The notes: generated by a model not told the origin, from the sequence alone. A stretch of 59,644 bases of DNA from Chara braunii (GCA_003427395.1 BFEA01000032.1:224206-283849), one strand, 5' to 3'; shown: positions 14,691 to 50,118, numbered from the stretch's first letter. Numbers and translations: made by a program.

Positions 14691-14693
14691 ATT

Positions 14694-18454: not shown

Positions 18455-21400
18455 GTCCTCGTGATGTCAAGGCGCCAAGACGTTCTCCATACGAGTTTGA
18501 GTGAATCTTTTTTTTAATCTTGAGAGACTGACCTTTCTTTCGCTACACTTCTTACTCTCAATTCAGTCTGTTGTTCGGGAGAGGAAGGCGGCAAGTAAGA
18601 TTGCAACCCACAAGACCGCATCAAGACCCTATGGGAGGTCAGCCCACTGATTGCGGAAGCTCTGTGGGAGTCCAGGAGGGGTTCTAGAGGCAGGGAACAG
18701 TTAGGTATAAATTCGTTTTACACATATAATCCCGTAATCCTTCAGTTTTACTACCTTTTTTTTATTGAGACTGTGATTGAAATTACTTACTCATAGCTGT
18801 ATTTTATTTTATTTTATTTCTTATTTCATGTTTGGTTATGAACTGAAGGAAGCGAGATTTGCGTGAAATTCATGTCTTTTATCTATTTAAACTAAAAAAA
18901 AACAAAAGGAGGAAGGCGAGAAAAATACGTTTTGCTTGCGTCGAACCGGTTCAACCAAAGTTTTGACGTACCGAAAAGATGGGGCAGTCCTGGGCTATGT
19001 TTATTTTTTTGTATACTGGATTGTTTGCTTGATCTTCAGAGGTTGTACACATCATGTTTTTTTTTGTTTTTAGGTTTCTAAAGGGAGGATGGGAATATAG
19101 GTTGGGCAATCCAGAATCTCTGCTTTCTTTTGGTTTTTAAAGGAAATGGGTCGACGCGAGCCGTGAAACCTAATTGAAACTGAAGTATACAAATTGATCT
19201 TATATACTTTAAATATATTGATTTAGCAAACTACACGTATCCCTAAGATGAGGCGGTCTAGTCAATGAGTCAGTTAGAAGATAAAGCAAAAAAAAATAAA
19301 TTGGATTATAATATTCATGGTCATCCGAACAGATTGGGCATACCCCTAGGATGGAGCGGTCCAGTCATATGCCCGTAATAACATGAAAAGACAGAGAGTT
19401 AGTACAAAATTGGTTATCTGAATTTAAACATGGTTAAGGCAGGTTTGGGCATACCCCTAGAATGACGTCGTCTAATTGTCTGTCAAAAGAGAGAAGGAAT
19501 TTGTGCATTGCATGTTGAATGTTGTTATTGTTGCGAAAAGTTTAATGTACCCCGAGGATAGGGCAGTCCAGTCATACGTTAGAAAATTGCTACTGGGCAT
19601 ACTAAACGTACCCCTAGGATGAGACGATTTAGTCTTATGCCACAAGTGATTGTTTGGGCGGTCAGGCGCACCCCTAGGATGGGGCGCCCTGGTTATATGC
19701 CTTATGTCATTTTTAGGCAGATACTAGACGTACCCCTAGGATGGGGCGATCTAGTTACCTGTCTTATGTCAATTGTTTAAGCTCGCTAAGCGTACCCCTA
19801 TGATGGGGCGGCTTAGCCGCACGCTTTTGTCGATCGTCTAAACGGGCTTTGCGTACCTCTACGATGAGGTGGTCTAATCATATATTTTATTTAACCCCCT
19901 GGGATGGGGCGGTTTGACCTTATGCCACGGGTAAGGAAAGGGTATAAGAGTTTAATCTAACAGAGAGACAAATGAACTATGTGTTTGATAAATGACTTAA
20001 GGGCTTAGTGAGATATATGATTGTGCTTACTTGTGTATGCTTTGTGGGTTATCTCTTGGGGGCGTTTTTTTTCTTTTTCTTCGATAACTTAGTTGCTTAG
20101 AAGCTCGTCAAGTACTAGAGTCATAGGCAGACTATAATGGACGATGAGAAGGAAAACTTGGAAGAAGATAGGACTGCCCTTACTAAAAGTTATGACTAGT
20201 GCTAATTCGTGAACCAAATTCAAAGAAGAAACGTGTAGATTATCTTTAGTTCGAACTACTGGGTAAGTATCAAAAGTTAGTCTTAAGTGTAGTTGTACTT
20301 TACTTCTGCATTTTCTGCTTTGTATAAATTTTGGCAGCCTTCTTCTTTTACCTGAAGCAGTGCTGAAAGTTTTACAAATCTGAAAACATTTAGTCATTTT
20401 GGAGTTTATAAAACTTTTTGAAGTACATTTTTACTACAAGAAGCGCTACCGTTTTTTTTTTCTGAAATTTGAGGAGTCAGTTCATTTTCTGCTAGGGAAA
20501 GTTTGACAATCCATCCTATATAGGGGAGATGCTGCCAAAAGTTTTGGTTGATACCGATTTTCATAGATGAGCTAGGCTACTGTATGGAGCATGTCCTTCA
20601 TTTATTCTTAAACATAACATTGTTCGTTTAGCCTGTATTGTGATGCCGATTTACACATTCGATGGAAGACTCGATTTGTTCAGCTTGATCATATGAAGCA
20701 TCGCTTTTTTGTTATATTTTAATAGTAGGTCGGTTTATGACACAACTTATCTTCTTCTACATCTCCACCTAAGGCCTTAGCCCCTGTGGGTTTTAATGTT
20801 TCTTAGGATTTTCACCCATACTTCTTTTTTAATGGTAATTTTTAAAGATTGGATGTCTTTATTGTGGGATGTAAAAAATAGTTCGGGCTAAGTGTGCATG
20901 AGTTGCAGGGAACGGTAAAGTGAACTCTCTGTTGTTGTTCAAACTTTGTCTGATCGCATATATACGTGGAAAATTTTATATTATATCTTGATGATTGTCT
21001 GTGTGTTGCGTGTATGATGATGGATAAAACATAATATCTTTGTGAGAGTGATCACCTGACGCTACACAACCTCTTTTTTGTTTGAGTGATTGGACTATTT
21101 TATGTTGTGTGGTTTCTGAGTCCAAGGGCACTCGTGTATATCCGCACATGATACCCACAACGATGTACGCGCATATTTTCGCTATTTGAGTTAGTTGGTC
21201 GGACGTTGGTCTTGAAAACTGAATCTGAGGTCCTTGTTCATGACATTTCAGGTTTCAGTTCAGCACCAATGGATTTCCCCCATGCTCTGAATATTTGCTT
21301 TTCACCCATCGAAATGCTCTACCTAAGGGTTAGAGGGGTCGCGAGGGTTGAACATCTGATCCTTCAACCATTCTATATCGTGAAGTAGATTTCGTTCACA

Positions 21401-22505
21401 ATACTTCATTTATAACACTTGAGTGTCGTGCGCAACTCTAAAGCCCGTGAAGGGTCGAGGGACTATGGGCAACGGGTGAAGGCGTCACCATGACAACTGA
21501 TTGCGAGAGTTCGTATAATTGGATATTGTGGTTTCCCCTCACATCCACAATCACTTTTAAACTTCCTTGTGTGCGCTTCACGTGAAGTTCGCAAGCAAAT
21601 TAAGTTATGGGTCGGAACATTCACAAAGGGAACGAGATGTGAATCAACCACTTTCTTGAACACGGTTGTCGTGGTCGGCACACACGTGTTTAGCATAAGC
21701 TAAGACCTATTAATATTACACGTTCGAACACGCGCGACGAGTTCATTTTCATTGTTTAAAATGAAAATCTTCGTGAAACGGTAGAGTTTGGGGTAGAAGG
21801 CCTAGCGTATTATCGGGGATATGCCAGACAACTCACCACCACTCGAAGTTCCCTTTTGCCCTAAATGCCATCCTACCTTACCCCGCTTTGGGGCACAACA
21901 TAGTGTAGAAGATGGTAGTGTGCTCGGTCTATTTCTGCACTCATTAAGGGATCAACCTTCACCGCGCGCGTCAATTGACACATGAGCGTCTAATTGTGAG
22001 GTCATGTTTCAGAGGGGGGCACATGTTTATTGGCACCACATAGTACTCCATCATACCGACTGCTTATGAATTTGTGCAGCCAATCAATATGACTAAGGTT
22101 TGCGACACGATGAACATTTATGCGAAGTTCAACCCACTATCTTTGCCACTCAAGGGTAAAAACAGTTAAAGGTTGAGCGAAAAAAAATGAATAAACACGA
22201 TTTGCACATAGACTCGAGTTTTAGTTGAAAGATGTATCGCGTGGTTAGAATGGTCGTCCTCCTCAATAGGTGTAGGATCACGTTCGAAAGATCAGCACCT
22301 CGGGCGAAGATTCACTCTCGGGTCTGATTCGGGCGTTAATCACGCCTACCCCCTATGCTACAGTGAATGAGAAATGTCCTCGATCGAGCCACCTCTGCTA
22401 TTGCATACGAAAATGTTTTGCATGTGGTTCGATAGCTCGGCGGGGATACGCCCACCTAAGGGAAGGTGACAACTCCCGTAGGTGGAGGTGAGTTGTACCT
22501 CCCGT
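18455..22505 (+). mobile_element. Element B1 (most diverged copy, 5'-truncated); its 3' tail is displaced to 49973-50118
   Basis: Colinear blocks homologous to B2/B4 (GC block, hairpin array, gaagc..gctgcc repeats, terminal module). agttgtacctc at ~22491 pairs with gaggtacaact at ~50005, so the terminal hairpin is rebuilt across the insertion. Confidence 0.8.
19228..19922 (+). repeat. Array of ~10 bulged hexaloop hairpins (cg-ta-cccc-TAGGAT-gggg-cg core) in B1
   Basis: e.g. actaga-cgta-cccc-taggat-gggg-cga-tctagt and gctaag-cgta-cccc-tatgat-gggg-cgg-cttagc. Spacing ~60-110 bp with distinct spacers. Confidence 0.85.
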
Positions 22506-24019
22506 TGTCGGAGCAAAAATCCTGGTAAGGGTTCCTGCCCAAGTTTCTTAAGATCAGACGTTGTCCGATCTTTTCGTACAATTGAGGGATTTGTGTCGGA
22601 CACTATCTGGCCTTTTTTGTTGGATTGAGAGACTTGACGAGGTTTACGTTGCTAAAGTTTATTCAAACCAACCCTATGACCGAGAAATTTGAATTTTGTT
22701 TTTAAGAACATGACGTCCTTGACGTCCAATTGAAACAGCAGGAGTCGGTGGTACGACCTGTCATCCACGGTGTCTGACAAGGTCGTGGAGGCACTTGGTC
22801 ATGAGCATGTTGAAGCTCGACTTCCTTTACCTAAAAGGTGGCCATGGTCGCACGACTTAGGACCTTAGTAGGCCAGATAGGTGATCGTGCCATCTACGTT
22901 GTCAGTGCGAATACCCTTACAAGGGTATCCGCCCTGTTTTTTTGCAAGGGACAGAAAATAATTTGGTTTAAAGTCTAAGTATACCGCGCTAGGCGCGGCT
23001 GTGTTTGTGATTACGTTGACTCGATGGCCGACTAGAGTAAAGAGTGCGTGGGCGCGCAGGTTTAAGGCGCGCGTGATTCATCCCCTGATGTCAATTACAA
23101 AACCAGCGCGGGCGACGGTCTATTTATTTTTATTTTTTATCCTTAAGTTTTATTTTTGTTTATTGTTGATTAAACTAGGACGTGGGGGATGTTGTTCGTT
23201 GATTGGTACGTTCGCCCGAGACGCGCGCGCGGAGAACGACCTCGAGGACGACTTCGACGACGGTGACGGCGGCAACGGTGTGACTGCGGTAGGTCTTGGC
23301 ACGCGGGGTGGCGCGAATGGCGGCCGTGGTACAGCTTGGTAACTCTGCGCAGACGCTGGGCAGTTGCGCGCACGGTTATAGGCAGGGAGGAGGCTCGGGC
23401 CAATTTCCCTGGCCCCGAGCGCAGCGCCGCACCGCCTCATATAGCACTCCACAGATGTGGGTCCCAGGCTTGGGCTTAGCCTTATAGGTTACGACATTGG
23501 ACTTACACTACGGAGGTTTGGGGATCGAGGTTGGCAAGCTTCGATGCAGCGGCAACGGAGCATCGAGGAGGAAGCTGATGGGGTTGAGGGTCGTGGGGCT
23601 GTCCCCCTCGGTTTTGATGGTGGTTGCGTTTTCTGAATGATTTTATTGCTATTGTCGTATTTTTTTTTATATACCCCTGGCAGGCCGTTGATTTGGACGA
23701 AATGCCGGACCTAATGACCATCACGATGGTCGAGGACCTTGAGTGCGTGCCCCGTTTGTAGGGTTCGTAGGACTGGGGCGTTGGCGGAAATCCTACCGTG
23801 CCGCTACCAAAGGAGCGTGGCCTGGTCAAAAACCTGAGTTAAAGCTCTACTTGGAGGCCTAGGGTTGTGCGGCGCAGGGGAGGCAACGCAACGGCCCCCA
23901 ATTTCGTTTACTGTTTATGTTTTTGTTTTAATTTTTATTTTTATTATTTTACCGTTGCAGTAATTGGGGGTCATGAGCATGCGCCTCTTTTGACGGACCG
24001 ATGGATTCCTCCGTATTCG

Positions 24020-24208
24020 GGATGCCGTCGAAATTCCTTTATTCCACCCGCCTTGAAAAATATGGACCAGGAATTTTACATGCATACAAGTCGGTGGGTG
24101 ATTAGCCCACGAGACGGAAGGAACCTGAGTGGTGGGAACGTCGGCGGATGCATCATCCGCCAACCACGATCTGCTGTGTGAGGTTTGGGTGTGAGTATGC
24201 CCGCGGGG
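24020..24208 (+). pseudogene. Degenerate 25S/28S rRNA fragment (end of D2 through D3 region)
   Basis: acccgccttgaaaaatatggaccaggaattttacatg.. resembles the conserved LSU ACCCGTCTTGAAACACGGACCAAGGAGTCTxACATG. It continues to gggtgtgagtatgccc, which is partly repeated at 24357-24392 (..ccgaaaga). Confidence 0.75.
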
Positions 24209-24411
24209 TTTTCCCCTGTATCGGGCTTCAAGGCTCTCATTTGAAAAAGTTACTACGGCCATCAAGATTTGCGTCGAGCCCGCCACCACTTTGGCCCACG
24301 TTTCAGGCAGGGTAGCAAGACCGCGCTTTGATTCCGCGGTCTGCTGCTAAAGGGGCGGGTGTGAGTATGCCCGTTGGGGGCGCCGAAAGACAGCACAGGC
24401 AGGTGGGTTGA

Positions 24412-24429
24412 GTCCTTCGGGACGTCCGT

Positions 24430-24461
<32 letters not shown>

Positions 24462-24492
24462 TGCCCCTGCACAAGGATGATACGTATAAATT
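24412..24492 (+). pseudogene. U6: U6 snRNA copy (3'-truncated) inside B2
   Basis: gtccttcgggac..aaaattggaacgatacagagaagattagcattgcccctgcacaaggatga closely matches plant U6, including the ACAGAG box and ISL. No USE/TATA context and no U-tail. Confidence 0.93.
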
Positions 24493-24591
24493 GGGGGCGG
24501 GGCTGAAAAGTCGAGCTTTCTGAGAAAAGGGGTACTCTCCGACTGTGGGCAGGACGCGGAGTGCTACGGTAGCGGGCGTTGGGGTTGTGGA

Positions 24592-24700
24592 GCGAGGCCA
24601 GAGGAAACTCTGGCGGAAGCTCGCAACGATACAGACGTGTAAATCGTTCGTCGGACTTGGGTATAGGGACGAAAGACTAAACGAATTGTCTAACAGTGGT
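24592..24700 (+). pseudogene. 25S/28S rRNA fragment
   Basis: gccagaggaaactctgg..gacgtgtaaatcgttcgtcggacttgggtatagggacgaaagactaa matches the conserved LSU GCCAGAGGAAACTCTGG..GCAAATCGTTCGTC..GGGTATAGGGGCGAAAGACTAATCGAAC. Confidence 0.9.
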
Positions 24701-26936
24701 ATTGCGAATTGGCAGACCGGTCAGACTGCTGCCTACCTGGGGCTGCGGCGGTGTAGGAAGGAAGGAGCGCGGGGGTGAGTGTTAGAGAGAAGAGGCGATA
24801 GGGGGTGTGAACCAGGACGCAAATTCACGCTGGGTACACTCTACAGAGGGAAACAGAGATGGCGGATAGCAAGCTCGAGCGCAGCACGGAGGCGGGAGCG
24901 CATGTGATTGAGGGTGGATCTGGATGAGTGGGAGATGGCTACGGGGTTTTTCGGCCATGGTAAGCATGATGGCGTAGTTAGATTAGTGAGAGGGTTAGTA
25001 GAAAACGGGCTAATACAGAAAACTATTGCGCGGAGCTATGGCGGGAAGTGAGGGAGAAGGAAGACAAAAATGAAGATCTCGCTCGTTTCTTAGCGAAAAC
25101 GAGCGAGGGAGGAGGCGAATCCGGGGTTCTAGCCCCCGACGAGTACGTTAGTGTTGTTAGTTTTAGTAGTAGATGAGTAGAAAACGAGAAAAAGGAGAAA
25201 GAGGCCGCGCGAAGGTGGCGGGAATGGCTATGGGGAGAACGATCCCTCGCTCGGTTGGTAGTGGAATCGATTGGAATAGGCCCGGCGAGGTAGATTATAG
25301 TTTTAGATGTGGAGTCAGCATGTTAGTGTTAGTACTATAGGGGTCAAAGATTGCATTGTGCGTGAACTACGAGGAGGAGACTGAAAAAAAAAAAAAAAAA
25401 AAAAGGAAAGGGTGAACGAACCCGGACGCGTTTCTGCATCAGATTCCTTCGCAGGTTCTGATGGGGAAACAACGAGTATGGCGAGTCAGAAATTCTGTAG
25501 TTCACCCGATCCTTGACGGAATCAGGCGAACCAAGAGTCGCTCCGTGGGTATTGGGCTGGGGTGAACACATTTTTGAAGTTAGATTAGGAAGCGGGTTAA
25601 TAGAACTAGAGTTAGTGGAGGAGGTGGTGCGCAGCTATGGCAAAGTGAGGGAGCGGGCAGTGAGACCAGGGGAAGGGGGCTGCAGGCTATTTGCCTAGCC
25701 GGAGTACTGCCCGCAGTATTGAATACGGTGGTGGGGGTCAGCCACGGGATGACAAAGGCTATCGTGCGGAGTGGAGCGCTGCCTTTCTCAACGGGGGAGC
25801 AGCCGGGGAGCTTGCGGGCCTAACTACTGAATAAGGTACTACATATCTTATCCGTCTGCACGTGTGGGAAAACTAGTCACAGAAAGTTGCGGGTTCACAT
25901 GTTGGCCGCAAGCTGTTGGCCGCAAGCTGTTGGCCGACAGCCTGCGGCTCATTTGAGCCGTTTTTCACTAAGGTATCGCTAATGGGACCACGCATGTAGT
26001 TATTCGTTGTATGCCATTGAGCATTCGGAGTGGCACTGACCACTATTGCGCGCTGTATGCTATACTGGCCACAACTACCGTGGCAAACCAGATTCGGCAA
26101 GACTACAGTTACCATTACTGCTTGTTGACGGTGTGGTTCGCTGTCTTGTGTCAGCTGCATATGCTTCTGCGCTGGTATCGTGCATATTACTACTCATTGA
26201 GGTTGAGTGTCCTGCTGCGGCAGCTACTGGGCCTATCGTAGGCTACGGCGTTGGTCCGAAGTTTGACTGTTTGGGCCAACGTGATTGCGGGGGGGGCGAA
26301 AGGCGTAACATGAAGGAGTAGCCAACCTATGAGAGAAGAGTGGGGCTAGAGTTCGGAGGTTCGTCCGGGGATTAGAGTTCAGCAGTTTGACGTCAGGCTG
26401 ACTGAGCAGCTGACACATGGCCGCCATTGCGGGGCCCTCAGGCACGTAAAGGTCTCAAGGCCCTCTCCTGCGAGTCGGGAGCACCCTCCTTGGATCTAAG
26501 AGACTGAAATCTTCTACCTCTACCCTTCTTACTCCAACTCTAGTCTATTGGTTCTGAGAGGAAGGCGGAAGGCGGGATTGCAACCCGTAGGTTCGCGTCA
26601 AGACTCTGTGGGGAGTCCACCCACCGATTGCGGGAGCTCTGCCGGAACTCATGAGGAGTTCTGGAGGCAGGGAATCGTCAGGTAAACCATTTCCATATGT
26701 ACAACCTACGACCACCCATGTTTTGCCTATCCCCCTGTAATATGACTGCTGTATGCATGAGATTATCCCTATGGTTTTTTTTTTCCCTTCAAGACCCAAT
26801 CAGACTGAATGGAAGGAACGTGTGAAAGTGAAATTTAAGTTTCTTTTTTGTTTTGACTGAAAGCAGACTAAGGTATGAATTGGGGGAAGGTGGGAGGAAG
26901 GCAGTTTTGCATGCGTTTGGAAGGGTCAACCAAAGT

Positions 26937-27619
26937 CTGAGCATTGTTTCTACTGTGAATGGCTCAGGGCTATGTTTATTTGGCTATTTTCTGAAGGACC
27001 ACACATTGTTTCTACTGTGAATGGCCTGGTTGCTATGTTTATCTAGTTGTTTTCTGGAGGACCAGGCATTGTTTCTACTGTGAATGGCCTGTTTACTCTA
27101 GTTAACTCTGGGGGTTTGCCTAATTGAAGGGGTTTAAATTCTTGGTTTATTCTGAGGGAGGATTTCTGGTCTAAGGCTAAGCATTGTTTCTACGGTGAAT
27201 GGTTTAGCCTGAAAACCACGCACATAAGTTAAACTGAGTATAAAGGGAAAATACTTTATATATATTTGCATGTGAACTGGCAGCTGGGCATTGTTTCTAC
27301 TGTGAATGGTGCAGCGTTAAGCCATATCATTAAGAAGAGAAAAGGAAAAATACAAAGTATAAATGAAAATAGTCTGGGCAAGCTGAACATTGTTTCTACT
27401 ATGAATGGTTCAGCCCCCTGCCCATATTTATTTTTCTTTTGAAAACAAAGTCAGAGGAATACTAAACTTTGGATGTTAAACATCTCAGGGCGACTAGGCA
27501 TTGTTTCCATGGCGAATGACCTAGTCATCTGCCCAAAAGAAGAGGGAAGTAGTTGTGCAATCTGTTCGTGTGTATCTTAAAGACAAGTTGGGCATTGTTT
27601 CCATGGCGAATGGTCCAAC
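26937..27619 (+). repeat. Array of 8 bulged hexaloop hairpins (cattgtttc-N6-gaatg core) in B2
   Basis: Copies at ~26937, 26997, 27061, 27175, 27282, 27382, 27492 and 27587. Flanking stems differ but pair (ctgag/ctcag, ggctaag/tttagcc, gctgaa/ttcagc, gactagg/cctagtc). Confidence 0.92.
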
Positions 27620-27929
27620 TCTATGTCTTATGTAAGTTGGGTATAAAAGTTAAAGGACTTGAAGATTCATTAACTATTTATATGGAATAAACTTGGGTTG
27701 GTGAGAGTACTTACCTTTGTGGTCTGGTTTGCATGTGGCTGAGTGATAACACTACTTATCTGAGTTCCAGTTTGATAGGTAGTTGCTTTAGCTGCTCGCC
27801 GTGTGCTAGAGTCATAGGAGTTAGTGTCAATTCCTACATTTTCTGTAGTAACTTTTTTTACTTAGGTCAATTCTTGCATTTTCTGAGATATTTTTTTATA
27901 CTTGGCTTTGTATAAATCTTAGCAAGCTA

Positions 27930-28535
27930 CTTTCCCTACGGGAAGCGCTGCCGAAATTTCTACAAATCCAAGGAGTTAGTCGAATTTTGACTTATCAAAA
28001 GTTCAACTTTGTCTTTCTTATATCTGACTTAGTAAAAATCTGGAAAGTCTTATTTTCTAAAGGGAGTGTTGTACAAATTTTTGCTAATTCAGGGAGTTAG
28101 ACAAAATTGGACTTTGAGAAGTCAAAGTTACTTTCAAAATTTGGACTTAGCTTTGTACAAATTTTGGAATAACACTTTTCTAGAGGAAGTGCTGCCGAAA
28201 TTTCTACAAAATTAAAGGAGTTAATTAAATTATGTCTAAAGTTGAGGTCGAGCTGTATTTCGAATTCATATATGACTTAGTATAAATCTAGGAAGTCTCC
28301 CTTTCTAAAGGGAGTGCTGCCCAAATTTCTGTTATTTCAGGAAGTTAGACATAAATTTGACTTTCCAGAGTTTGAGATTATTTCTATTTTCATATTTGGA
28401 CTTATATAATTTCTGGAAAGACACTTTTCCTATGGGAAGCGCTGCCGAAATTTTCTTAGTTTAGAGAAGATATATTAGATTTTGACAGGTGACGATTCTG
28501 GCGATCCACCCTTAATAGGGGAGATTCTGCCATTA
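27930..28535. repeat. ~123-bp period repeats (ggaagcgctgccgaaatttct..ggagttag) in B2
   Basis: 5-6 units. Homologous arrays at ~20330-20545, 35755-36235 and 43165-43525. Confidence 0.8.
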
Positions 28536-33393: not shown

Positions 33394-33590
33394 TGGGGAT
33401 TGCCGCGGGTGCATCATCCGTTGGCGGTGGTCCGCAGTGAGCGGTTCGAGTGGGACGTGCCCTTGAACCTGGAAAGAGGGGGGCTAGGCCTGACCCAGTT
33501 GACCAGGGGCATCAGGGCAGAAGCCCGCTGCACCACCGTGCAAATCGTCCGTCGGACTCGGGTATAGGGGAGAAAGACTAATGGAGCAAA
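33394..33590 (+). pseudogene. Degenerate 25S/28S rRNA fragment in B3
   Basis: gtgcaaatcgtccgtcggactcgggtataggggagaaagactaat plus upstream ggttcgagtg and gggtgcatcatccg. Same LSU interval as in B2. Confidence 0.8.
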
Positions 33591-33854
33591 CCAGCGGCAG
33601 CTCTCTTCTGAAGCTCTTTGAGAGTGCGTGGCGGGACTGCGCTAGGCATCAACGAACGACAAAGCGGGCTGCGCCGGGCACTGGGAAACTATTGCGGGCG
33701 GAAAGCTGCGTCATCCCTATTTCAACGTGGGCAGGGTGGAGAATTTTTCGTCGGTACGCTGCGTCCGACGACGTAGTAACTGAGCCCGGCCAGTCGGTCC
33801 CGATACTAGCCTCGGAACTGATTCGCGAAGCCAAAACAATAAAAATGCAGTAGA

Positions 33855-33855
<1 letters not shown>

Positions 33856-33914: not shown

Positions 33915-33916
<2 letters not shown>

Positions 33917-35032: not shown

Positions 35033-35092
35033 AAATTTGGGCTGTCTCTCGATTCATGCGTGTCATCCGTGCGCAGGGGTCATACTAATCTC
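35033..35092 (-). pseudogene. U6: U6 snRNA 3' half
   Basis: Reverse complement gagattagtatgacccctgcgcacggatgacacgcatgaatcgagagacagcccaaattt matches the plant U6 3' half. Confidence 0.88.
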
Positions 35093-35127
35093 CACGCGAC
35101 TGTTTTCAGCTGCGCGATCTCATCAAC

Positions 35128-38724: not shown

Positions 38725-38812
38725 GTCCTTCGGGACATCCGTAAAAGTTGGAACGATACAGAAAATGAAGCTTCGTACCGCCCCGCGCACCATAGGTAGG
38801 TATAAATCGAGA
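38725..38812 (+). pseudogene. U6: Degenerate U6 snRNA copy in B4 (plus a second 5' fragment at ~38532-38563)
   Basis: gtccttcgggacatccgtaaaagttggaacgatacaga, then ataaatcgaga at ~38802. The middle is diverged. Confidence 0.75.
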
Positions 38813-39579
38813 GGGGGGGGTTGTGACGAGGTTTTCTGCTCCTCGTTTTCTACGTTGCATTCGTTTCCGCGGTCCGTTGTGGTCAACCGCCGGCGGGGTA
38901 CGCTGCTGTTGTAGTCGAGTGGAGTCCAGGAACTGGCGGGGCCGCGCTGGGGAACACAGGGAGAGGAGGGTGGCAACGTGAGAACGCGAACCTGGACAGG
39001 GTTCCGACCCGGGTGCACTCGGCAACGGGAGGAAGGCACGGGGCGTATGCGGAGCAGGCCGTACTGTGGAGTGGCGAATAGCAGGGCAGTGAGGCGGGAG
39101 GAAGTGAGGACGCTGAGGTGGGGCGGAGCGCAGTCGGGGAGGAGCTAGTAGACGACGAGGAAGACGAATGAATGTGTCGGGGGTTCTGCAGCAGGTACAT
39201 GTGGAGCAATGCGCAGAGCCCGGCGGCACCAGGCAGCAGCAGGTAGCTAGCGCAGTGGGTGACAGGCAGCGGTGAGCGGGGTTGGGAGGTGGTAGAGACG
39301 GGGTGAACCCGGGCGCGTCTCCGCGCCGGATTCATTCGGGGGAAAAGGGGTTACGACGGAGCCAATGGTAGAGAAGCCCACCGATCTTTAACGCAGTGGG
39401 ACGGGTGAAGGTGTTAGTCGGGGGATTGCGGGCAGGGCGAACGCGGTGGTGAGGCCAGAACGGCGAAAGGAAGGGTGTCATGGAAGGTAGGGGGAAGAGC
39501 AGTGCGTCGGGGCCATGGCCGAACGAGGGAGGGGAATGACGGGAAGACGTGCCTCCCGCTCGTTTCTGAACGGAATCAG

Positions 39580-41163
39580 GCAGGTGAGGGCTCGAAACAA
39601 CGGTTTTCGAGAGGGGCGAGTACGGATCTGTAGTTAGTTTTGATAGGGAGTTAGTAAGTATAGAGCTAGCAAGGGAAGGTGGTGTGGGGACGTGGACGGG
39701 GGAGCGTGTGGAGGAGTCGAGAGGGAGGAGAAAGAGGCCGATGAACCCAGACGCACGGGGAGGCTACAGTCATGGGTTGTAGAGCTTATTGCAGCTCGTC
39801 GTCTTCTTGCAAAACTATAATCGCGTAGCCTCTCGCAATCGAGTCCGGATTTGAAATCGTCGTTCCGGTTTTCCAACTCTCGTTCATGATTTCTCATTCG
39901 TGATGTGCAACATTAATAGTTGAGTATGGTTGGACTATGAAACCAGGAGCGGAGGGACAGCGGGAAGGCAAGGACACAAGAAGGAAGGGGATAAGCAGAG
40001 CTTCCCGATGAATTGTAAGCAGAGAGGGAATGAAAGCCTGAAGACTTGCCCTCTCGCTTGTGTGCTACCCAGTCCGTCGCACGAAGTGGCAGGGGTCGGG
40101 GGCTCACCGATTAGCCGGTGCTCATCCTGTCGGAACGAGGGGGATTGATAAAGTTGGCGGCTTATTTACAAGGAGGGTTACACTCTCATTAGTTAAAGCA
40201 GCGGGGAGCAAGGCAGCGAAAGAATGAAGCTGCAGAGTTGGGACTGGTATTGTACCTTGCTAAGGACATGTCGGGCCATGCCTGAGTATACTGTGTAATG
40301 TGGTGCACAGATGTTGCTGTGGACCGTGGCCGTGGCTGTTGACCTGCATTGCTGTGTACTTGATGCTGCAGGTGAGGGCTCGAAACAACGGTTTTTGGGA
40401 GGGGCGAGTACGGATCTGTAGTTAGTTTTGATAGGGAGTTAGTAAGTATAGAGCTAGCAAGGGAAGGTGGTGCGCGAACGTGGACGGGGGAGTGTGTGGA
40501 GGAGTCGAGAGGGAGGAGAAAGAGGCCGATGAACCCGGACGCACGGGGAAGCTACAGTCATGGGGTGTAGAGCTTATTGCAGCTCGTCGTCTTCTTGCAA
40601 AACTATAATTGCGTAGCCTCTCGCAATCGAGTCCGGATTTGAAATCGTCGTTCCGGTTTCCAACTCTCGTTCGTGATTTCTCATTCGTGATGCGCAACAT
40701 TAATAGTTGAGTACGGCTGGACTATGAAACCAGGAGCGGAGGGACAGCGGGCAGGCAAGGACACAAGGAGGAAGGGGATAAGCAGAGCTTCCCGACGAAC
40801 TGTAAGCAGAGAGGGAATGGATAGCAAGCCTGAAGACTTGCCCTCTCGCTTGTGTGCTACCCAGTCCGTCGCACGAAGTGGCAGGGGTCGGGGGCTCGCC
40901 GATTAGTCGGTGATCAGCCTGTCGGGACGAGGGGGATTGATAAAGTTGGCGGCTTATTTACAAGGAGGGCTACGCTCTCATTAGTTAAAGCAGCGGAGAG
41001 CAAGGCAGTGAAAGAACGAAGCTGCAGAGTTGGGACTGCTATTGTACCTTGCTAAGGACATGTCGGGCCATGCCTGAATATACTGTGTAATGTGGTGTAC
41101 AGATGTTGCTGTGGACCGCGGCCGTGGTTGTTGACCTACATTGCTGTGTACTGTTGACGCTGC
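39580..41163 (+). repeat. ~790-bp tandem duplication inside B4
   Basis: gcaggtgagggctcgaaacaacgg at 39580 and 40368, with colinear units. Confidence 0.92.
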
Positions 41164-41948
41164 GGGCTGGGCGCAGACTACTGCTACTGACAACTATTGC
41201 AAACTGCTACTGCTCGCTGTTGGCTACTGCATATTACGGCATACTATCGTAGGTTGTGGCCAGTTGATATAGCCGTTGTGCGGTGGCGATTGAACTAAAG
41301 GGAAATGCTAGGATTCAGAGGGGTGATTGGACTATGAGGCGAACTGCTGCGAATTGGGGAGTCCTTAGGAGGGTTTGGGTTTCGCGGTCAGCGTTAGTTT
41401 GACCCGACGGGTGTTACTTAGCTTCCATTGCAGGGCCCTCAGGCGAGTGAAGATATCAAGGCTCTCTCCTGCGAGTATGAGTGCACCCCTCTTGTATCTG
41501 AGAGACTTAGTGATTCTTCTTCTGCCCTTCTTACTCTCGATCTAGTCTGTTGGTTCTGAGAGGAAGGCGGCAGGCGGGATTGCAACCCGTAATCCGCGCC
41601 AAGGCCTTTGTGGGAGGTTCGCCCCACCGATTGCGGGAGATCTGCCGGAACTCAGGAGGAGTTCTGGAGGCAGGGAACTAGAGGGTAATCATTGTTTCCC
41701 CTCTATACACCCAAGTATAACCCCTATTTGTACATTTTTCTATGGTTGGCTGAATGTGTTGCATGCGCCCCTACCTTGGCCGTGGTTCGACCTTCAGGAC
41801 ATAAGTCAGACTAAGTAAAGGAATGTATGCATAATGACAGTCTCAGTCTCTTGATTGCCTGAAAGCAGACTTGTTCAGGAAAGGGGGGTGCATCAGGGGG
41901 AAGGGTGGGAGAAAGGCAGTTTTGCTTGAGATTGAAATAGTTTTATAG

Positions 41949-42853
41949 GGTCAAGCATGTTCCATAAGATTGGATGGTCTGACTACTGTATTCATTCTGG
42001 TTTTCTGAAAAGGTCAAACTTTGTTTCTATGATGGATGACTTGGTCATTGTGTTTATTTAATTTCGTCAGGCTTTGTTTCTAAGATGAATGGCCTTGCTA
42101 TTTACTTTGTGGGGTTTTGGCTGTGCAAACTTGAGGACCAGACTTTGTTTCTACAATGAATGGTCTGGTCGTTGTTTATATTTGGGTGGTTTCTGAACAG
42201 CCTTTGGGTATACTCAGAGTGCTCTGCCTTTTTTTTGTGCTGAGAAGAGAGGGTTGAGCTTTGTTTCTAAGATGAATGACTCAACTCTTTCGGTTGTTTT
42301 ATTCTGAGGGAATAAATCATATTGAGGACAAAGCATGTTCCATAAGATTGGATGGCTTTGGACTCATGCCACACACAAATGGATCAGAGAGAAATCAACT
42401 TGGCAAAGGACCAGATATGTTTTATAAGATTGGATGGTCTGGTCCAATGCCTCGCACATGCTGGAACCCAAAAGGTTATAATTTAGCTATATCCTATTAT
42501 TATTCTACTTAAGAATAGGCTAGCCAGGCAAGGGTTCCATAAGATTGGATGGTCTAACTATAGCTTACCATAAGTTGAAGAGAGTACAACTAAGAATATA
42601 ATTGAGGGTAACTTTGGGCAGGCTGAGCTTTGTTTCTAAGATGAATGGCTCAGTCCTATACTCAGTTTTTGAACACTAAGTTCAGTGAGATATATATAAC
42701 TTGGATATTAAACAGTTCAGGGCGACGAGGCATTGTTTCTAAGATGAATAACTTAGTCATGTGTCCAAAGGAAGAGAAAAGTAGTTGTGCAACATGTTCG
42801 TGTATACTTGATGGCTGAGTCAGGCATGTTCCATAAGATTGGATGACCTGACT
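41949..42853 (+). repeat. Array of 11 bulged hexaloop hairpins (mostly TAAGAT loop) in B4
   Basis: Two interleaved cores, ca-tgt-tcca-taagat-tgga-tg and ttgt-ttc-taagat-gaa-tg, each closed by a different paired stem (gaccaga/tctggtc, gttgag/ctcaac, agtcagg/cctgact). Confidence 0.9.
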
Positions 42854-45800
42854 TTACGCCCTATGTAAGCTGGGTATAAAGGGGTTAAATCACTGAAAGA
42901 CTATGAACGATTGTTTGTTCAGGCATACTTTGGGGTGGTGAGAGTACTTACCTTTGTGGTTTGGCCTGCATGTGACTGAGTGAGGCTACTACTTAGTCTG
43001 AGTTTCAGTTTGACAGGTAGTTGCTTTAGAGGTTCGCCACGTGCTAGAGCGATAGGAGTTAGTCTCAATTCCTGCATCTTCTGAGCTAAGTTTATTTTAC
43101 TTAGATCTATTATCGCATTTTCTGGGATCTTTTGTTATACTTGGCTTTGTACAGATTTTGGTAAGCTACTTTCTCTACGGGAAGCGCTGCCGAAATTTAT
43201 GCAAATCCAAGAAGTTAGTCAAACTTTAACTTTTCAAAATTCAACTTGTCTAAAGTTCATACATGACTTAGTAAAAATCTGGGAAGTCTTCGTTTCTAAA
43301 GGAAGTGTTGCCCAAATTTTTGCTAATTTAGGGAGTTAGACAAAATTGGACTTTGGAAACTCAAGGACTATTTCTGGTTTTATATTCAGGTTGGTGTAAA
43401 GTATGGAGAGGCACTTTTCCTACGGGAAGCGCAACCGAAATTTTCTTAGTTTAAAGGAGTTAGATTATATTTTGACAGGTGGCGATTCTGGCGATCCACT
43501 CTGTATAGGGGAGATTATGCCAGAGTCTACCTTTGCTTTGGGCACTGCCTAGCAGTAGATTCAGGCTTAGTCAATTAGGATGATTTATGTGAGATCGTGA
43601 TATGGGGTTTATTCTCCATGGACTTATAGGCTTAGCCTGGGGATTGATTTGTCTTGTGTTACAGGTCTTCTAGACCGTTTGATTCAGGATTTGGACCAAT
43701 TTCAGCTTGATCCTATAAGGATCATCTTCTGTTATCACTGATAACAGGTCGGTCGCCGATTCGTCGGTCTACGACTCAATTCCAACTCACACTTCGAACT
43801 CAACCTAAAAGGCTTTAGCCCTGGTGATCTTATTGTTTTATTAAGGTTTTCACCCGGACTTTTATTGAATGTTCATTTAACAAAGGTGCTGAGTATTTAA
43901 TTATGGTTGGTTGGACTGAAGATTGGGGCTTGCATGGCTAAAGTGAGGGGTATGAGTACAGAGGATGGTTGGGGTTGACTCTGTGTAGTGCGTGAGTCGC
44001 CGTGGACTGTCATTTGATTCGCTGATGTGATTGCAGGTATGTTCTGTGACTCAAATTTGAGATTTGATTGACCTACGATCACATATATACATATGGTTGC
44101 AAGAAGGCCCACTGAGACTGTGAGAAGTGATCGTCACATACTTACCCCTTTATATATGTATATGTGGATGCACCTATGATGAGTGTTCGCGTGACCTAAG
44201 GGGTCCCGTACTATAGGCTTACAAGGACTGAGGGACCTAAGGAAGATCCTTCCCTTTATTCTGACTGCTTCTTGAGGGCTTCTCAGTCGGACGTTGGTCC
44301 TAGGCCGGGGTTCAAGGTCCTTGTCCAGGACACCCCAAGCCCTAGGCTCTGCGGGGAGTGAGCCTCCCCTCGCGCAGAGCCTATTAGCTCTGCCCATCGA
44401 GACACCCAACCCTGAGGGCAGAAGCGTAGCGAGGGCCGAACGGCATGTCCTTCAGCCGTTCAATATCGTGAGGGGTGGCCCCTCGCGATATATTCCTTCA
44501 GCCATTCAATATCGCGAGGCCGAAGCCGCGATCACCACGCATGACTAGCATCGTTAGTTGGTATAGGGTTGGCCTACAAACCGCGCGGCTCTATATTAGA
44601 ATTCTGCGCGCGACGCTTCTCTGCCCTTGTATCTAAAGAGTTATGGGATAGCGGGACTTGCATGTAAGCACAAATGTATGGGACCACTATAGGCCGCTGG
44701 TGCTAACCGAGAAAGGCACCCAGGGGCATGATTATTGAGATAGGGGAGGCCTCCGGCCTACTTTTGCTGCTTTGAGTTATCATGGTTGGACGTTATAGTC
44801 CGTGGCAGCCGTCAAAGTCAAACCCCTTGACTTGGAGTAGGACTTATCCCCAAGGCCGCAAGAAACGACTGCCATCACAAGTGCGGACCTGTGTACCACC
44901 CGCTCTGCACAGAGTGCAGAAGAGGTACAATTTTTTGGAAAAACTTGTCACAGTGTGTGGTCTTCAACCGCGCATGGCGGTTCTCCAGCGTCGAAAGATT
45001 AACCCTCAAGGCGCGTGTCAGCCGACACTTGAGTGTCGAATGCGACCCCCGGGTTTAACGAGGGTCGTGTAAGTATGGGTACTACATAGTACGCCATCAG
45101 TGTGACCGCTTGCACATGTTAGCATTGCGAGTCGATATGAGTTAGCCCTGCATCCGCGCGACTTTATACTAAGTCTCGCGCGTGTCGCCTATCCGATTTC
45201 CGCATCGGAAAGTTATGGGATGACTGCTAAAGGACTAGGAGTGTTGTCGCGTTATTTATTTGTGTTGTTCTGTGTACGTGCGTGTGTATGTGTGTTTCAT
45301 TTTTTTGGGTTCGTAGTGTGGTGTATGCGTGGTGAGTGGGATGCGTCCTAGTCGACCGGCGACGGGCCGCGCTTGGGACTTCAGCCCCCCAAGTTGATGG
45401 TTCGCGTGCGGGCTCTGCAGAGGCGTATTACCGCGCGTACCCCCTATGCTACAGCGAACGAGAAACGCCCTCGGCTGGTCCACCTTTGCGATTGCAACTG
45501 ATTAGCTTTCGTACTGTGGACTGGTAGCTCGGCGGGGATATGCCCACCGAAGGGAGGTGACAACTCCCGTAAGGTGGAGGTAAGTCGTGCCTCGCGTAGG
45601 CCCTATCCTGTCGTAGGGGCTCGCGGGAGGTATGGCTGGCGCACTCGGCCGGAGCGGCTTGCGGAAGCTCCATGTGTATTCGCGGCGAAGGATTAAAACC
45701 AACTCCTTCGTGACGCGGCCGGGAGGGTCCCGCACTGCCCTGGTGCGATGCCGGACCGATGCGCTCGACAGTGCCTCGCGTAGGCCCTATCCTGTCGTAG

Positions 45801-45954
45801 GGGCTCGCGAGAGGTATGGTTGGCGCACTCGGCCGGAGCGGCTTGCGGAAGCTCCATGTATATTCGCGACGAAGGATTAAAACCAACTCCTGCGTGATGC
45901 AGCCAGGAGGGTCCCGTGCTACCCTTCAGTGGTGCCGGGCCGATGCGCTCGACA

Positions 45955-46090
45955 GCGGTCGGGTGCATTGCAAAAAGTTGGGAATTGATGTTCCTAGTGG
46001 AACATCAAGATTCCCAGCCGGGGGTGGCGGTCGGATGCATTGCCAAAAGCTGGGACTTGATGTTTCTAGTGGAACATCAAGATTCCCAGC
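45955..46090. repeat. ~66-bp tandem repeat with strong inverted repeat
   Basis: gggaa-ttgatgttcc-tagt-ggaacatcaa-ga-ttccc, two copies. Confidence 0.8.
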
Positions 46091-46174
46091 CCTCGATCGA
46101 AGTTCAGATCGAGGGTCAAACTAAGCCCCGTTTTTTGGCTAAGTCCCAAGTGGCTAACCACCACTCCAGCCCAT

Positions 46175-46183
46175 CTATAAAAG
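46175..46183 (+). promoter_or_regulatory. Putative TATA box of element C
   Basis: ctataaaag followed by a GA microsatellite (46256-46284), an arrangement common in plant LTR promoters. Inference only. Confidence 0.35.
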
Positions 46184-46251
46184 CAGGGCTGACCAGCAAC
46201 ATCCTCACTTAGTTGAGGTGCTGCCCACATTCTGGTTGAATGTGGAGTGCT

Positions 46252-46289
<38 letters not shown>

Positions 46290-47483
46290 GGTCTGCAGAG
46301 AGAGAAAGGGGGCTAAGGGAGAGACTGTTGGAGATGGTCATAGTTGTAGAGCATAGTCATAGCCACCACCTCGAGGGAAGGGAGAAGCGCTGGAGGTCTG
46401 CAGTGAGTGTGGGAGTGGAGGTTGTCATAGTCACCACTTCATTTGGTGAAGTGTACGAGAAGTGCTGATCATTCAGTGCATCGACGACAACCATTTTTGA
46501 AGAAGTACAGGGGAGGTATTGATCGTTCGGTGGGGCGACGACAGTCAATTGTGGTAAGGTGCAAGGGGAAGCGCTGCCCATTTTTTGCGGCAGCGACAGT
46601 GCGTTTTGGGTATTGGCGCAGAAGCGTTGTCCGTTTTTTTTGCGACGACGGTGATTTTTTTTACAGTGCTGACGTTATTCTGCCCGCATAGCGCGGCGAC
46701 AAGACATCGTTTCAGGGAGATGCCGTCAAAGTGGTGGTGTGTTTTGAGGTGGTGTGGAGGTTGTTTGCATAACGCAACAGTGACGCAGTGACGCAGTGAC
46801 GTTGGTGACGTGTGATGGTGACGCTGAGGCGCCGTGAGACTATTGGGAAGTGATTGTGTTGTGAGAAGGTATCGTGGCGGGCGGTCGTCACAAGAGAGTG
46901 GTGTGGATCACTTTGCTGAAGGTTCGTTGTGATAGTTTCTCATCTGAAGACAAGAGTTTATACAGTTTTCTTGAGTGGGTCATACATCAATTTCACTCAA
47001 GGTCAGTTTGACTCAGGCCCCTTCACACCTATGTGAACCCACACTTGCGTGACCCTGTTCTTTGAATGTTCACTGAAGAGGTAGAGGAAGTTGTGTTTTG
47101 TTTGCACGTATGAATGGAAGTCTGACATGAGTTTGGAATTGCATTGTCTTCTTTTGAACTTGTTGTTCGATTTGATGTGCATGTAGGTAGAAGGATTCCT
47201 AAAAAAAGGACCCGACCATGTTAATGGAAATGAATAGAAAAATGGTTGTCTTTTATTTCTCGCTTGTATGCATGTTGAAAGGATGGAAAATCAGTGGACG
47301 ACGAAAAGGAATTTGATCACACAAAGAAGAAGAAATCAATTGGACATAAACTCTTTCCTGAGGTTACTTGTGTTTTATTGAATGACCCTCTTTGTCTATG
47401 CTCGTCTATCTGAACGATTTTCTCTTCTGTGATTTTTTTTTTCCATCTAAGTTACCATTGACGTCAGGCGACAAGGGATCGTT

Positions 47484-48614
47484 TTGTCTTCCATGGTAGA
47501 CGTTTTTCCCTTTTATATGAGTCATCTGAGGTGGAGGTTCGTTGCCTTCGGAGCCGGCCCTGCTATCGACTCGGAGTTGACCGCTTATGCGGGGGTATAC
47601 CATGCTGTTGTGGTGGAACCAGCCCGACTTCTGAGATACGAGGTTCGTTCGGGCGAGGACGAGGACGAGGGGTATCCCAGACCACCTCCTAGGGGCAAGA
47701 CTTGCGGCAATTCACGGGGAGACCTTGAGTTTCATAACGCCTCACGTTAAGGGGGGAATTGCCATAGCATACCCCTTTAGTGGTCGTTTTAGGGGTCGCT
47801 CGCGCATGGGGAACTGAGCCACAAGAAGCTCGGTTCATGGCTATAAGTCGGAACAAAGTGCGGCTAGGCACTCTTGTCGTGGTTGGCCTCGCACAAGAAG
47901 CGAGGACCAATGGGGTCGATGTGGCGAGTAAGGCTTACATAGCTAGAGCCCAGGAATGACCCTTCTCAGCAGGGTCAAGGAGGACCACAAGGATAAGGCC
48001 TTTTGTCTTCTCTACATCGCAGGAAACCGATGGCGTACGCCGCGAGATTATTAACCCATTTTTTTTAATCGGACGCGCAGATGCCTAGGGCGAGGCGACA
48101 CTTGACGGTTCCGAAATACCTACTGGTGCGAGACACCATGGAAGAGGAGGCCATTGCGTGGGCGGAAAGGTTATCGATGGTCTTCGACGGGGCCCCTACT
48201 CGGTGGGTTGGTTTCATTGGAATGGTAAACAACAACCGCGGGTTTTTCCCCGCGGACTATGCCGCCATCCGCGCCATGGTGCCACGACGGTCGGACGAGC
48301 TTCATAGACATATATTGTACTTTCATCGAGTTATGGACATGAAGCTGCTGGCGCAAGTTGTGGTTGGGGTCCGAATTCACCCTTTTGTTCGGATATACAA
48401 CACTACTACGGAGAGACTGCTTCAGATGAATCGACAGTTCAGAGCGACTGTTTGGAGGATGACATATCAAGCGGCATCGCTTTACGATACGTACGAGGTA
48501 CATGTACGACGAAGCACGCGGACGGCGACTTTGACCTTCGATGCAGGCGAGTTTGCGTGGCTTGATGATCTTGAGGCGCAGGCGCAAGTTGGACCCCATC
48601 TCTACCATGAGTAG
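47484..48614 (+). pseudogene. Degenerate orphan ORF in element C (intact part 48081-48614, 177 aa)
   Basis: Protein-like frames 47484-47750, ~47768-48088 and 48081-48614 joined by stops/frameshifts. Paralog at 1148-2004. Poly(A) at ~48691. No family recognised. Confidence 0.5.
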
Positions 48615-49972
48615 CGGTAGTATGTTTGTCGTCTACTCTACACCCCGAGGCTTGGGCAAGTGTTGGCCGTAGCCTCGCAAAAGGGGTTACAAAAAAAAAA
48701 AAAAAAAAAAAATTCTTGTAGACAGGACCAACTGGATGGATAGTATCCATATCGCCCCGATGATAACAGTATCATGCATCGCATTGAGGGGTAAACAAGT
48801 GAAAGTGACTTGGTGTTAAGAGTTAACGAGACCAGAAACCTTTAGGAAGCTCTTAACGGTCAAGGCAAAATGCGTATTCCATTTTTTGCGGGGGGACAGA
48901 CAGGGTTGTTATTGCCAAGGAGGACAAGGCAACCAACAAAATTTGAAGGGGGATCCTCATCTTTAATGGGGTATCAAGTATTTCGGTTGTTCACGTCGAT
49001 CTTTAACATGTAGAGTGGTAGCCAGAGTACTTGCAGATGTCATTCACATCAAAGTTACAGTGAAAGCGAAGTCATCACTAGAGCGATAACATCTTAGCCC
49101 TGCTTGGAAGTTGGGATGTCAGCATTTGTTTGCTAGTAGTCAGTGTGGTATGGGCTGAAAGAACTTGGCAACGCGTCTCACCGAGTTAAGGGTTATGTCA
49201 GCCTAGCCATATGGCAGACGAAATGGAGATGATTTGATCAGACGCTATTCAAGCGTCGCTTTGCATGTTAGTCATGCTTTTATCATTTTGTTGATAAGTG
49301 TTATTTAAAGTTAAGTCAACTCATGTTGGCTCGTCGTTGGATGAAAGGTCAAGTCAACCTTTATCGATTTCATCTGAACGAGTGGTATGCATGACTGTAT
49401 TATGTATGAGTTGATTTCAGAAGATAAGTCAACTTACATTGACCGGAGTCTTCTTTATTTGAAATTGTTTTGTCTGAGTAACTCCTGATTGTCTTCGAAA
49501 GAAGGGACTAGGATTGATTGAGATTTCCTTATGCTTAAGTTATTACGTCCCGGTCGACAGAGGTCGATCCGATTCCTGGCAGATCGGCGCCCCAAGGACG
49601 AACGACGCTCGGGTCCACTTTGGCGTTCAACCTCGCGTACCTATACTACAGCGAACGAGCAAACGCCCTCGGTCGGCCTACCTCTGCAATTGCATCATAA
49701 AATCCTTCACACGTGGGCCGATAGCTCGGCGGGGATACGCCCCTGAGGGTGATGACAACCCTTTAGGGAAGGTAAGTTGTGCCCTGTGAGAACCTATCAT
49801 GTCGAAGGAGACCGCGGGATGTACATCTGGCGCACTCGGCCGGAGCGGCGAAGGGTTGGCACGGGTTACCGTGTCGTCCCCAAATTGTGTCTAAAAAGTT
49901 GAAAGCCTAAGTTTCTTTTGTGTGACGCAGACGGGAGGACCCTCGCTTGCGCAGGGACCGATGCGCTTGACA

Positions 49973-50118
49973 GCGTGACCCTGTTCTGTCGTAGGGGCTC
50001 GTGAGAGGTACAACTGATGCACTCACCCAGAACGGCAAAACGCTCTTCGCGACAATGTTTGCAAAATCCTGTGTGACGTGGTCGGGAGGGTTCGCCTGCG
50101 GGACTCATGCGCTCGACA
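49973..50118 (+). mobile_element. Displaced 3' tail of B1
   Basis: Continues the B1 terminal hairpin and ends gcgctcgaca. Confidence 0.75.

Follow-up and report, generated by a model that had tools for sequence, protein, structure and literature searches.

Organization of the locus

The window that we analyzed is a 59,644-nt stretch of DNA from the charophyte alga Chara braunii (BFEA01000032.1:224206-283849), and all coordinates below are positions in this window. It contains a pile-up of non-coding repeats of 5.6-8 kb with TG...CA ends and 4-bp target duplications. The repeats, which we call B1, B2, B3, B4 and C, are nested within one another. They most likely represent an uncatalogued Ty3/gypsy family of Chara, whose unusually long solitary long terminal repeats (solo LTRs) were inflated by inherited insertions, and not a new class of elements. 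The nearest relatives of the window sequences were all from C. braunii, and the non-coding pieces matched contigs of this alga at up to 88-89%. For comparison, we used the C. braunii loci L001-L009 (roughly 280 kb), a small sample with many assembly gaps. Proteins were screened with Pfam on open reading frames (ORFs) and by tblastn with 160 retroelement polyproteins; Rfam was used for RNAs, TRF for tandem repeats and ARAGORN for tRNAs. The pile-up is composed as follows.

18320-22505, plus strand: body of B1, a diverged B-type core without a recognizable 5′ end, as judged from alignments and the head profile
22506-22899, plus strand: first piece of C, with the 5′ end TGTCGGAGC...
22900-30325, plus strand: B2 (7426 bp, duplication ACGT), with a head, a G-rich X region to about 26417, a core and a 185-nt tail
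30326-30544, plus strand: second piece of C, up to the left inversion breakpoint
30545-34157, minus strand: inverted 5′ part of B3 (head and X region), with the head at 34157 and GCGG before it
34158-35124, minus strand: third piece of C, inverted together with the 5′ part of B3 and holding a 3′ fragment of U6 small nuclear RNA (snRNA) and an antisense, sub-threshold hammerhead motif
35125-37725, plus strand: core of B3, up to the B4 insertion site
37726-45770, plus strand: B4 (8045 bp, duplication GTGC), which interrupts the B3 tail at its start
45771-45954, plus strand: tail of B3, ending in GACA and followed by GCGG
45955-49972, plus strand: last piece of C, with an internal run resembling a polypurine tract (PPT) and a TG start at 47744-47775, and with the C tail at 49786-49972
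49973-50118, plus strand: tail of B1, which continues the B1 body at 22505 once one copy of the duplication is removed

When reassembled, B3 is about 6.4 kb long and C about 5.6 kb.

Unit boundaries and target duplications

The boundaries proposed in the original prediction for B2 (22900-30325), B4 (37726-45770) and C (22506-49972) were exact, and all three units run TGTC...GACA. The flanks were also as predicted, namely acgt-TGTC...GACA-acgt for B2, gtgc-TGTC...GACA-gtgc for B4 and ccgt-TGTC...GACA-gcgt for C. B3 is indeed split by an inversion (~30545-35124). Its minus-strand 5′ end at 34157 is preceded by GCGG and its 3′ end at 45954 is followed by GCGG, in agreement with the duplication expected for this unit. 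The duplications are exactly 4 bp long, and the fifth bases never match. Three of them are perfect (ACGT, GCGG and GTGC), and three agree at 3 of 4 positions (C and two units from other loci, L003 and L002). In B2, B3, B4, C and the unit from L003, the ends read TGTCG or TGTCA at the start and CGACA or TGACA at the finish, and the L002 unit finishes with ...CGTCA. The inverted terminal repeat is thus 5 nt long, and beyond these 5 nt the two ends are unrelated. Both marks of a solo LTR, TG...CA ends and a duplication of fixed length in the 4-6 bp class, are present in the units.

B1 consists of a body and a tail without a defined 5′ end. Position 18455, where B1 had been predicted to start, is not a terminus, since B2, B3, B4 and a copy outside the window (L004) align through it and the homology fades only near 18320. 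The head profile, which was built from six known heads, found no B-type head for B1 within the window.

Architecture and coding content of the units

B2, B3 and B4 share a head of ~45 nt with an 8-bp palindrome, an X region of about 3-3.7 kb, a core of ~4 kb and a tail of ~185 nt. The X region is G-rich and hypervariable, with 52-56% GC, a GC skew of +0.12 to +0.27 and no CpG depletion; it can be aligned only in islands of 60-70% identity. The cores are 77-84% and the tails 84-91% identical among copies. Conservation therefore decreases from the tail through the core to X, with the extreme 5′ end and the last ~185 nt kept and the interior hypervariable. In B4, the X region contains a ~790-bp tandem duplication (39580-41163), the copies of which are 95-97% identical.

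The ordered modules that had been noticed in B2, B3 and B4 were collinear in self-comparison, and the 5′ palindrome was found in all three, with a degenerate version in C. The palindrome is conserved without compensatory changes. The further description of the modules as structured, and of the units as rich in RNA structure, was not established. The core-start module (205 columns, five sequences), the only one tested, can be folded into helices, with three compensated pairs in one hairpin; covariation measures for these sequences were not above those of shuffled controls. Another of the supposedly structured modules is a relic of U6 snRNA, described below.

The units have no coding capacity, as predicted: no Pfam domain was detected in any ORF of at least 100 aa, and none of the 160 retroelement polyproteins matched inside B or C. 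Captured genes were rejected, with no Pfam match among 40 ORFs, and the same domain screen found no transposase-like ORF inside the units.

The head and tail profiles, both scanned against the window, each match once per unit. Within each unit, the first kilobase shows no relationship to the last, and self-comparison found no terminal direct repeats. We considered whether the tail could be a separate short LTR and whether relic heads or tails persist within the cores; the profiles found the expected sites only. We also considered C as a complete element with 47761-49972 as its 3′ LTR. Two findings led us to reject this: the block is not related to the first 2.2 kb of C, and a C-like unit of 1.37 kb in L009 is collinear with the C head, the stretch immediately upstream of 47744 and the 3′ part of C. 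The L009 unit likewise indicates that C is a single unit.

The sequence ACGTTAAGGGGGGAAT, followed by TG(T/C)CATAGCATACCCC, lies inside the C unit at 47744-47775 and again at 1133-1164. It was likened to the junction between the PPT and the LTR start in the local chromoviruses, and may mark an older, shorter LTR boundary.

Nesting and probable order of insertions

Excision of C together with one copy of its duplication joins 22505 to 49973, and the joined sequence aligns with the body-tail junction of B4. Excision of B4 likewise restores a continuous B-type sequence in B3. Moreover, L002 contains an 851-bp C-like unit that can be aligned collinearly with C through both the B2 site and the left junction of the inversion. 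As the host sequence becomes continuous on excision, the units are insertions.

These observations bear on the possibility that nothing here is mobile and that the units are segmental duplications and rearrangements of one repeat-rich region, in which the 4-bp matches arose by chance. In favor of this, the locus includes an inversion, tandem duplications and a duplicated block of 2.4 kb. Nevertheless, three exact and three 3/4 matches were found at ends that the head and tail motifs set independently, and excision restores the host sequences. The presence of family members on six other C. braunii contigs effectively refutes this explanation, and we consider it extremely improbable.

The insertion sites of C in B1 and of B4 in B3 are both at the start of the tail and differ by no more than about 8 nt. 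With a target of ~7 kb, the chance of such a shared spot is about 0.2%. In addition, all nested insertions (6/6; five in the window and the L002 unit) lie in the orientation of their host, for which the chance is 1/64. Both the shared spot and the orientation bias hint at targeted integration. They could be explained by integration directed to the LTR's own transcription start, or by survival of only those composites that still worked as LTRs.

The order of events can be tentatively reconstructed from the nesting. C would have entered the start of the B1 tail first, and the C-in-B1 composite would then have been copied, giving the copies that end at 3503 and 50118. B2 and B3 would have entered C afterwards, with B4 entering the start of the B3 tail. 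A 4.6-kb inversion would finally have flipped the 5′ part of B3 and about 1 kb of C.

Family members at other loci and inherited cargo

The family was detected on six other C. braunii contigs, with unit sizes that range 30-fold, from 0.25 to 8 kb, while the ends remain constant. The smallest unit (L003, 252 bp) consists of only a head and a tail, and is flanked by GCGT and GCGC. The 851-bp C-like unit of L002 (40327-39477, minus strand; flanks CCAT/CCGT) sits within the pol of another chromovirus in the same orientation. In the B copy of L005, the X region measures only ~1.2 kb. L008 holds a B3-like head, and L004 a fragment of the core, upstream of which the sequence is G-rich but could not be aligned. 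A 100-nt tandem duplication in L008 (34000-34200) includes the flank of the B3-like head together with its first 37 nt. A protein search with ORFs from conserved B DNA returned one match (P0161, which led to L003) and one blank. Since the 252-bp, 851-bp and 1.37-kb units have the same head and tail, ordinary LTR sizes occur in the family, and the giant units are inflated versions of ordinary-sized ones.

Part of the extra material can be traced to U6 snRNA, which is present in three units.

24412-24511, plus strand: full-length U6 snRNA relic in the X region of B2 (Rfam, 79.3 bits), without the T-run terminator
38725-38770, plus strand: first ~45 nt of U6 snRNA in B4, collinear with the B2 relic
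35031-35095, minus strand: 3′ fragment of U6 snRNA (60 nt) in C, found with Rfam

The collinear relic shared by B2 and B4, and the double occurrence of the junction between C and B1 (described below), indicate that accreted material is inherited. L002 contains a U6 pseudogene with a 15-bp direct repeat and an A-run, as well as two U2 snRNA matches (19746-19859, 18609-18722 and 49431-49608 for these three features). The flanks of the pseudogene follow the pattern of retro-copies made by long interspersed nuclear elements, and retro-copies of snRNAs seem to be common in C. braunii.

The chromovirus fragment and the copied composite

Outside the pile-up, the window contains the following features.

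1-1132, plus strand: 3′ part of another TG...CA-type element (E), which ends with ...CTCACA at 1132, directly before ACGT
1133-3357, plus strand: the final 2.2 kb of C in a second copy, which together with 3358-3503 matches 47744-49972 with 90.9% identity over 2386 bp
3358-3503, plus strand: second copy of the B1 tail with the same GACA-gcgt junction; its identity to 49973-50118 is 90.4%, compared with just 62-74% for all other tails
14694-16812, plus strand: 5′-truncated Ty3/gypsy chromovirus pol, with the C-terminus of reverse transcriptase (RT), RNase H, integrase zinc-binding, SH3 and chromodomain regions
16829-17297, plus strand: PPT (GGGACGGCAGGAA) and the start of the chromovirus's own LTR, here called LTR-F (TGCAATACCCC...), with the same PPT and TG junction in L001 and L002

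The pol fragment is the only recognizable coding sequence in the window; nothing resembling human DNA, toxin genes or viruses of animals or crops was recognized. RT_RNaseH, Integrase_H2C2 and SH3_Tf2-1 scored above the Pfam cut-offs, and Chromo reached 23.4 bits versus a cut-off of 25.1. In the tblastn search, the fragment was collinear with chromovirus polyproteins, and its domains follow the chromovirus order. Its named protein relatives are all hypothetical proteins of C. braunii with 46-76% identity; the host is therefore a charophyte and not a seed plant. At the nucleotide level, the fragment is 75% identical to the pol of an intact chromovirus in L002, which is the only intact one recovered and the nearest to the window pol. 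The L002 element has LTRs at 4228-5412 and 10529-11698 (~1.18 kb, 97-98% identical to each other) with TGCAG...TTGCA ends, the PPT GGGTCGGCAGGAA, a primer-binding site (PBS) for initiator methionine tRNA (iMet) and a 4-bp duplication, GTCC. Duplications of 4 bp are thus the local norm.

The start of LTR-F was fixed by three copies with different flanks, at 16842, 17038 and 7635 (minus strand). TRF identified a tandem duplication of 196 nt (16797-17159) that straddles the 5′ boundary of the LTR and includes the end of pol, the PPT and the start of the LTR. The inverted copy (7375-7635, minus strand) lies 9.4 kb upstream of the pol-adjacent copy (16842-17297, plus strand). The latter diverges from the inverted copy after 261 nt, and the L001 copy (14315-14636) follows the inverted one to about 440 nt. 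When the LTR-F end was sought by aligning the end of the L002 LTR, the score was no better than for shuffled sequences. LTR-F showed no similarity to the B heads or the X regions. B1 as the LTR of the adjacent pol is therefore unproven, as LTR-F is real and differs from both.

The junction between the C end and the B1 tail (GACA-gcgt) occurs twice, in the copies ending at 3503 and 50118. Because the two are 91% identical over 2.4 kb, the composite was copied as a unit. The similarity starts exactly at ACGT (1133 and 47744), abutting the end of E, which is what an insertion of E at this point would give; the upstream copy probably continues past E and out of the window. A second occurrence of the last ~105 nt of E lies 572 nt upstream, giving ends at 560 and 1132; each end is followed by NCGT, the internal twin reading ...CTAACA-GCGT at 560. 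The twin ends look like another nested pair.

Given this arrangement, the composites ending at 3503 and 50118 could be the 5′ and 3′ LTRs of one element of >45 kb, in which the internal region would extend from 3504 to about 16841, pol would occupy 14694-16812, and the LTR, starting with B1 at 16842, would exceed 10 kb. This model is compatible with the solo-LTR reading of the other units. Both composite copies share a true terminus, past which they diverge, the pol fragment and its PPT have the same orientation and lie just upstream of B1, and the similarity begins at an ACGT directly next to the end of another element, so that the 5′ copy may run beyond the window. However, no PBS follows 3503 (3504-3545 were checked), and no self-priming complement was found within the repeat. 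Neither the polyprotein nor the Pfam searches detected gag, protease or RT between 3504 and 14693. Furthermore, the LTR start at 16842 continues differently in its other copies and resembles neither B-type heads nor X. We regard such a pair as possible but doubtful.

The interval between the upstream composite copy and pol (3504-14693) is an AT-rich block with 31% GC. It contains 8-bp tandem arrays (8041-8313 and 11146-11418), a pair of inverted repeats (4923-5629 and 10230-10997) and a weak ORF resembling Pif1 helicase (12541-12966, minus strand). Directly after the B1 end, at 50119-50160, we observed a string similar to a tRNA T-arm on the minus strand, where ARAGORN calls no tRNA. A repeat at 50631-50857 is also present in L009 (83%).

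Probable origin of the units as solitary Ty3/gypsy LTRs

The original prediction left a choice between very long solo LTRs of a Ty3/gypsy lineage and non-autonomous elements mobilized in trans. The former fits best with the ends, the fixed duplication and the conservation pattern, to which the absence of coding capacity and the nesting can be added; the paired copy that would complete it was not found. We consider it fairly probable that the units are solitary LTRs of a Chara Ty3/gypsy LTR-retrotransposon family, and infer that the tail corresponds to R-U5. The 4-bp duplication is no evidence for an exotic mobilizer, as it is normal in some plant LTR lineages and in the local chromovirus; the chief ground for turning to retrozymes, insect gypsy elements or Ginger thereby falls away.

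In the proposed course of events, an integrase producing 4-bp target duplications would have inserted each unit, after which recombination between the two LTRs of each element would have left a single one. The LTR interior would have accreted sequence, such as U6 retro-copies, other repeats and whole nested LTRs, and these would have been copied onward to give the giant units. The conserved ends, namely the head, presumably recognized by the integrase, and the tail, would have stayed constant during growth. Long LTRs readily collapse to solo LTRs.

Several observations weigh against this reading. Neither in the window nor in the gap-rich loci of our small sample was any unit seen as one of a pair around an internal region. 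Every complete unit is solitary, including the short ones, where the formation of solo LTRs should be less efficient. After about nine visible 3′ ends in the window and these loci together we found no PBS and no TGG-type site, and the iMet PBS pattern occurs in the window only at chance level; the loci contain ten iMet PBS sites, each of them next to an LTR of another type. No PPT precedes any of about nine visible heads, save for host sequence accounted for by a duplication. Finally, the pol beside B1 has its own, different LTR start and cannot be claimed as the partner of the B family.

The same observations lend themselves to another interpretation, in which each TG...CA unit is itself a mobile, non-autonomous element, recognized at its head and tail, inserted by a Ty3/gypsy-type integrase in trans and never part of an LTR pair. 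Across sizes from 252 bp to 8 kb, every complete unit stands alone, has a duplication of its own and keeps the same ends, which is the pattern of derivatives that arise by deletion and expansion from an element defined by its termini; neither a PBS nor a PPT adjoins any end, and all six nested insertions follow the orientation of the host. On the other hand, solitary copies are the usual fate of long LTRs, and the sample is small, with C. braunii loci full of assembly gaps. Mainly because we know of no reverse-transcription route that yields an integrase-competent cDNA without LTRs, we judge this interpretation unlikely. Slightly less likely still is its fuller form, in which the B and C units would be a terminus-defined, LTR-less, non-coding class that inserts singly by means of a Ty3/gypsy-type integrase, in one orientation and at a preferred tail-start spot of its own kind, and grows by keeping insertions. 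If the units were never paired, they would constitute a new kind of integrase-mobilized element.

Comparison with known systems

The retrozymes and Ginger transposons, to which the units had been likened, are not supported as relatives by structure. Retrozymes share with the Chara units the 4-bp duplication, TG...CA ends, absence of coding sequence and presumed trans-mobilization by Ty3/gypsy enzymes. However, they are 600-1000 nt long and have two ~350-bp LTRs, each with a type III hammerhead, together with a PBS (tRNA-Met) and a PPT. The Chara units were rejected as retrozymes, as they have no paired LTRs, no PBS and a single antisense, sub-threshold hammerhead. This type III motif (34595-34649, plus strand, antisense to C) has an intact CUGAUGA...GAAA...GUC core and scored 39.2 bits versus the Rfam cut-off of 48.5 (E = 5e-5). 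About 60 nt around it recur on their own in L006 (17785-17846) at 84%. Hammerheads in C. braunii have already been reported in Chlamys Penelope-like elements (PMC8557442).

Ginger DNA transposons combine an integrase-like transposase with TGTNR termini and a 4-bp duplication, and non-autonomous members of this type would explain the TGTCG/TGTCA ends on both strands and the duplications at our locus. Their terminal inverted repeats, though, measure tens to hundreds of bp, whereas those of the Chara units are 5 nt long with unrelated sequences beyond, and the domain screen revealed no transposase-like ORF. The asymmetric head and tail and the one-directional nesting also fit LTRs better. We therefore rejected this identity on structure and hold it to be very unlikely.

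Terminal-repeat retrotransposons in miniature (TRIMs) and large retrotransposon derivatives are recognized by two LTRs around a non-coding region with a PBS and a PPT. The Chara units do not have this arrangement, as their ends are unrelated and each has one head and one tail. A closer parallel to the U6 module, in the sense of a module derived from a small-RNA gene and inherited inside a repeat, is provided by Cassandra, Helenus and Ajax. These are LTR elements with small-RNA gene sequences in their LTRs, and snRNA-derived modules are not mentioned in the report that describes them (PMC10886601). Unlike the Chara units, they are short TRIMs, and their 5S or tRNA promoters are presumed functional; the Chara U6 relic, without a terminator or a recognizable promoter, looks like a passenger.

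The intact L002 chromovirus belongs to the same host genome and has the same 4-bp duplication and TG...CA ends. Unlike the B and C units, it has ~1.18-kb LTRs reading TGCAG...TTGCA, with no similarity to the B or C heads or tails. The Phygy elements of Physcomitrella have an NCGN target preference (PMC6317226), and most of the Chara duplications fit this pattern (ACGT, GCGG, C/GCGT, GCGT/C and CCGT, with ACGT and GCGT by the E ends). In contrast to the Chara units, Phygy elements are short, non-chromovirus elements of a moss, and GTGC (B4) and GTCC (the L002 element) do not fit NCGN. GC-rich targets may contribute to the NCGN pattern.

The solo LTRs of plant and algal Ty3/gypsy elements, including the long-LTR Ogre/Tat and Tekay lineages, agree best with the Chara units. 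They have TG...CA ends, a short inverted terminal repeat and a fixed short duplication, and are non-coding, mutually nested and solitary, with a variable U3-like interior between conserved ends. They differ in that no paired copy or partner coding region was identified for the Chara units, two of four nested Chara insertions are at the same ~8-nt spot, and all lie in the orientation of the host. In a plant-wide survey, 4-bp duplications were found in 6.2% of LTR elements and were a trait of some lineages; LTRs of ~5 kb were the reported maxima, and those above 6 kb were undetectable (PMC6317226). Our literature search found no paper on LTR sizes in Chara. If the Chara units are LTRs, then single LTRs of 7-8 kb (and composites of >10 kb, should the pair described above be real) exceed the survey maxima. 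Such elements would be systematically missed by standard LTR finders, since the survey could not detect LTRs of this length. The locus shows how LTRs may become so long, as a U6 retro-copy and a whole nested unit were both inherited by later copies, and inflation of this kind bears on the repeat-richness of the roughly 2-Gb Chara genome.

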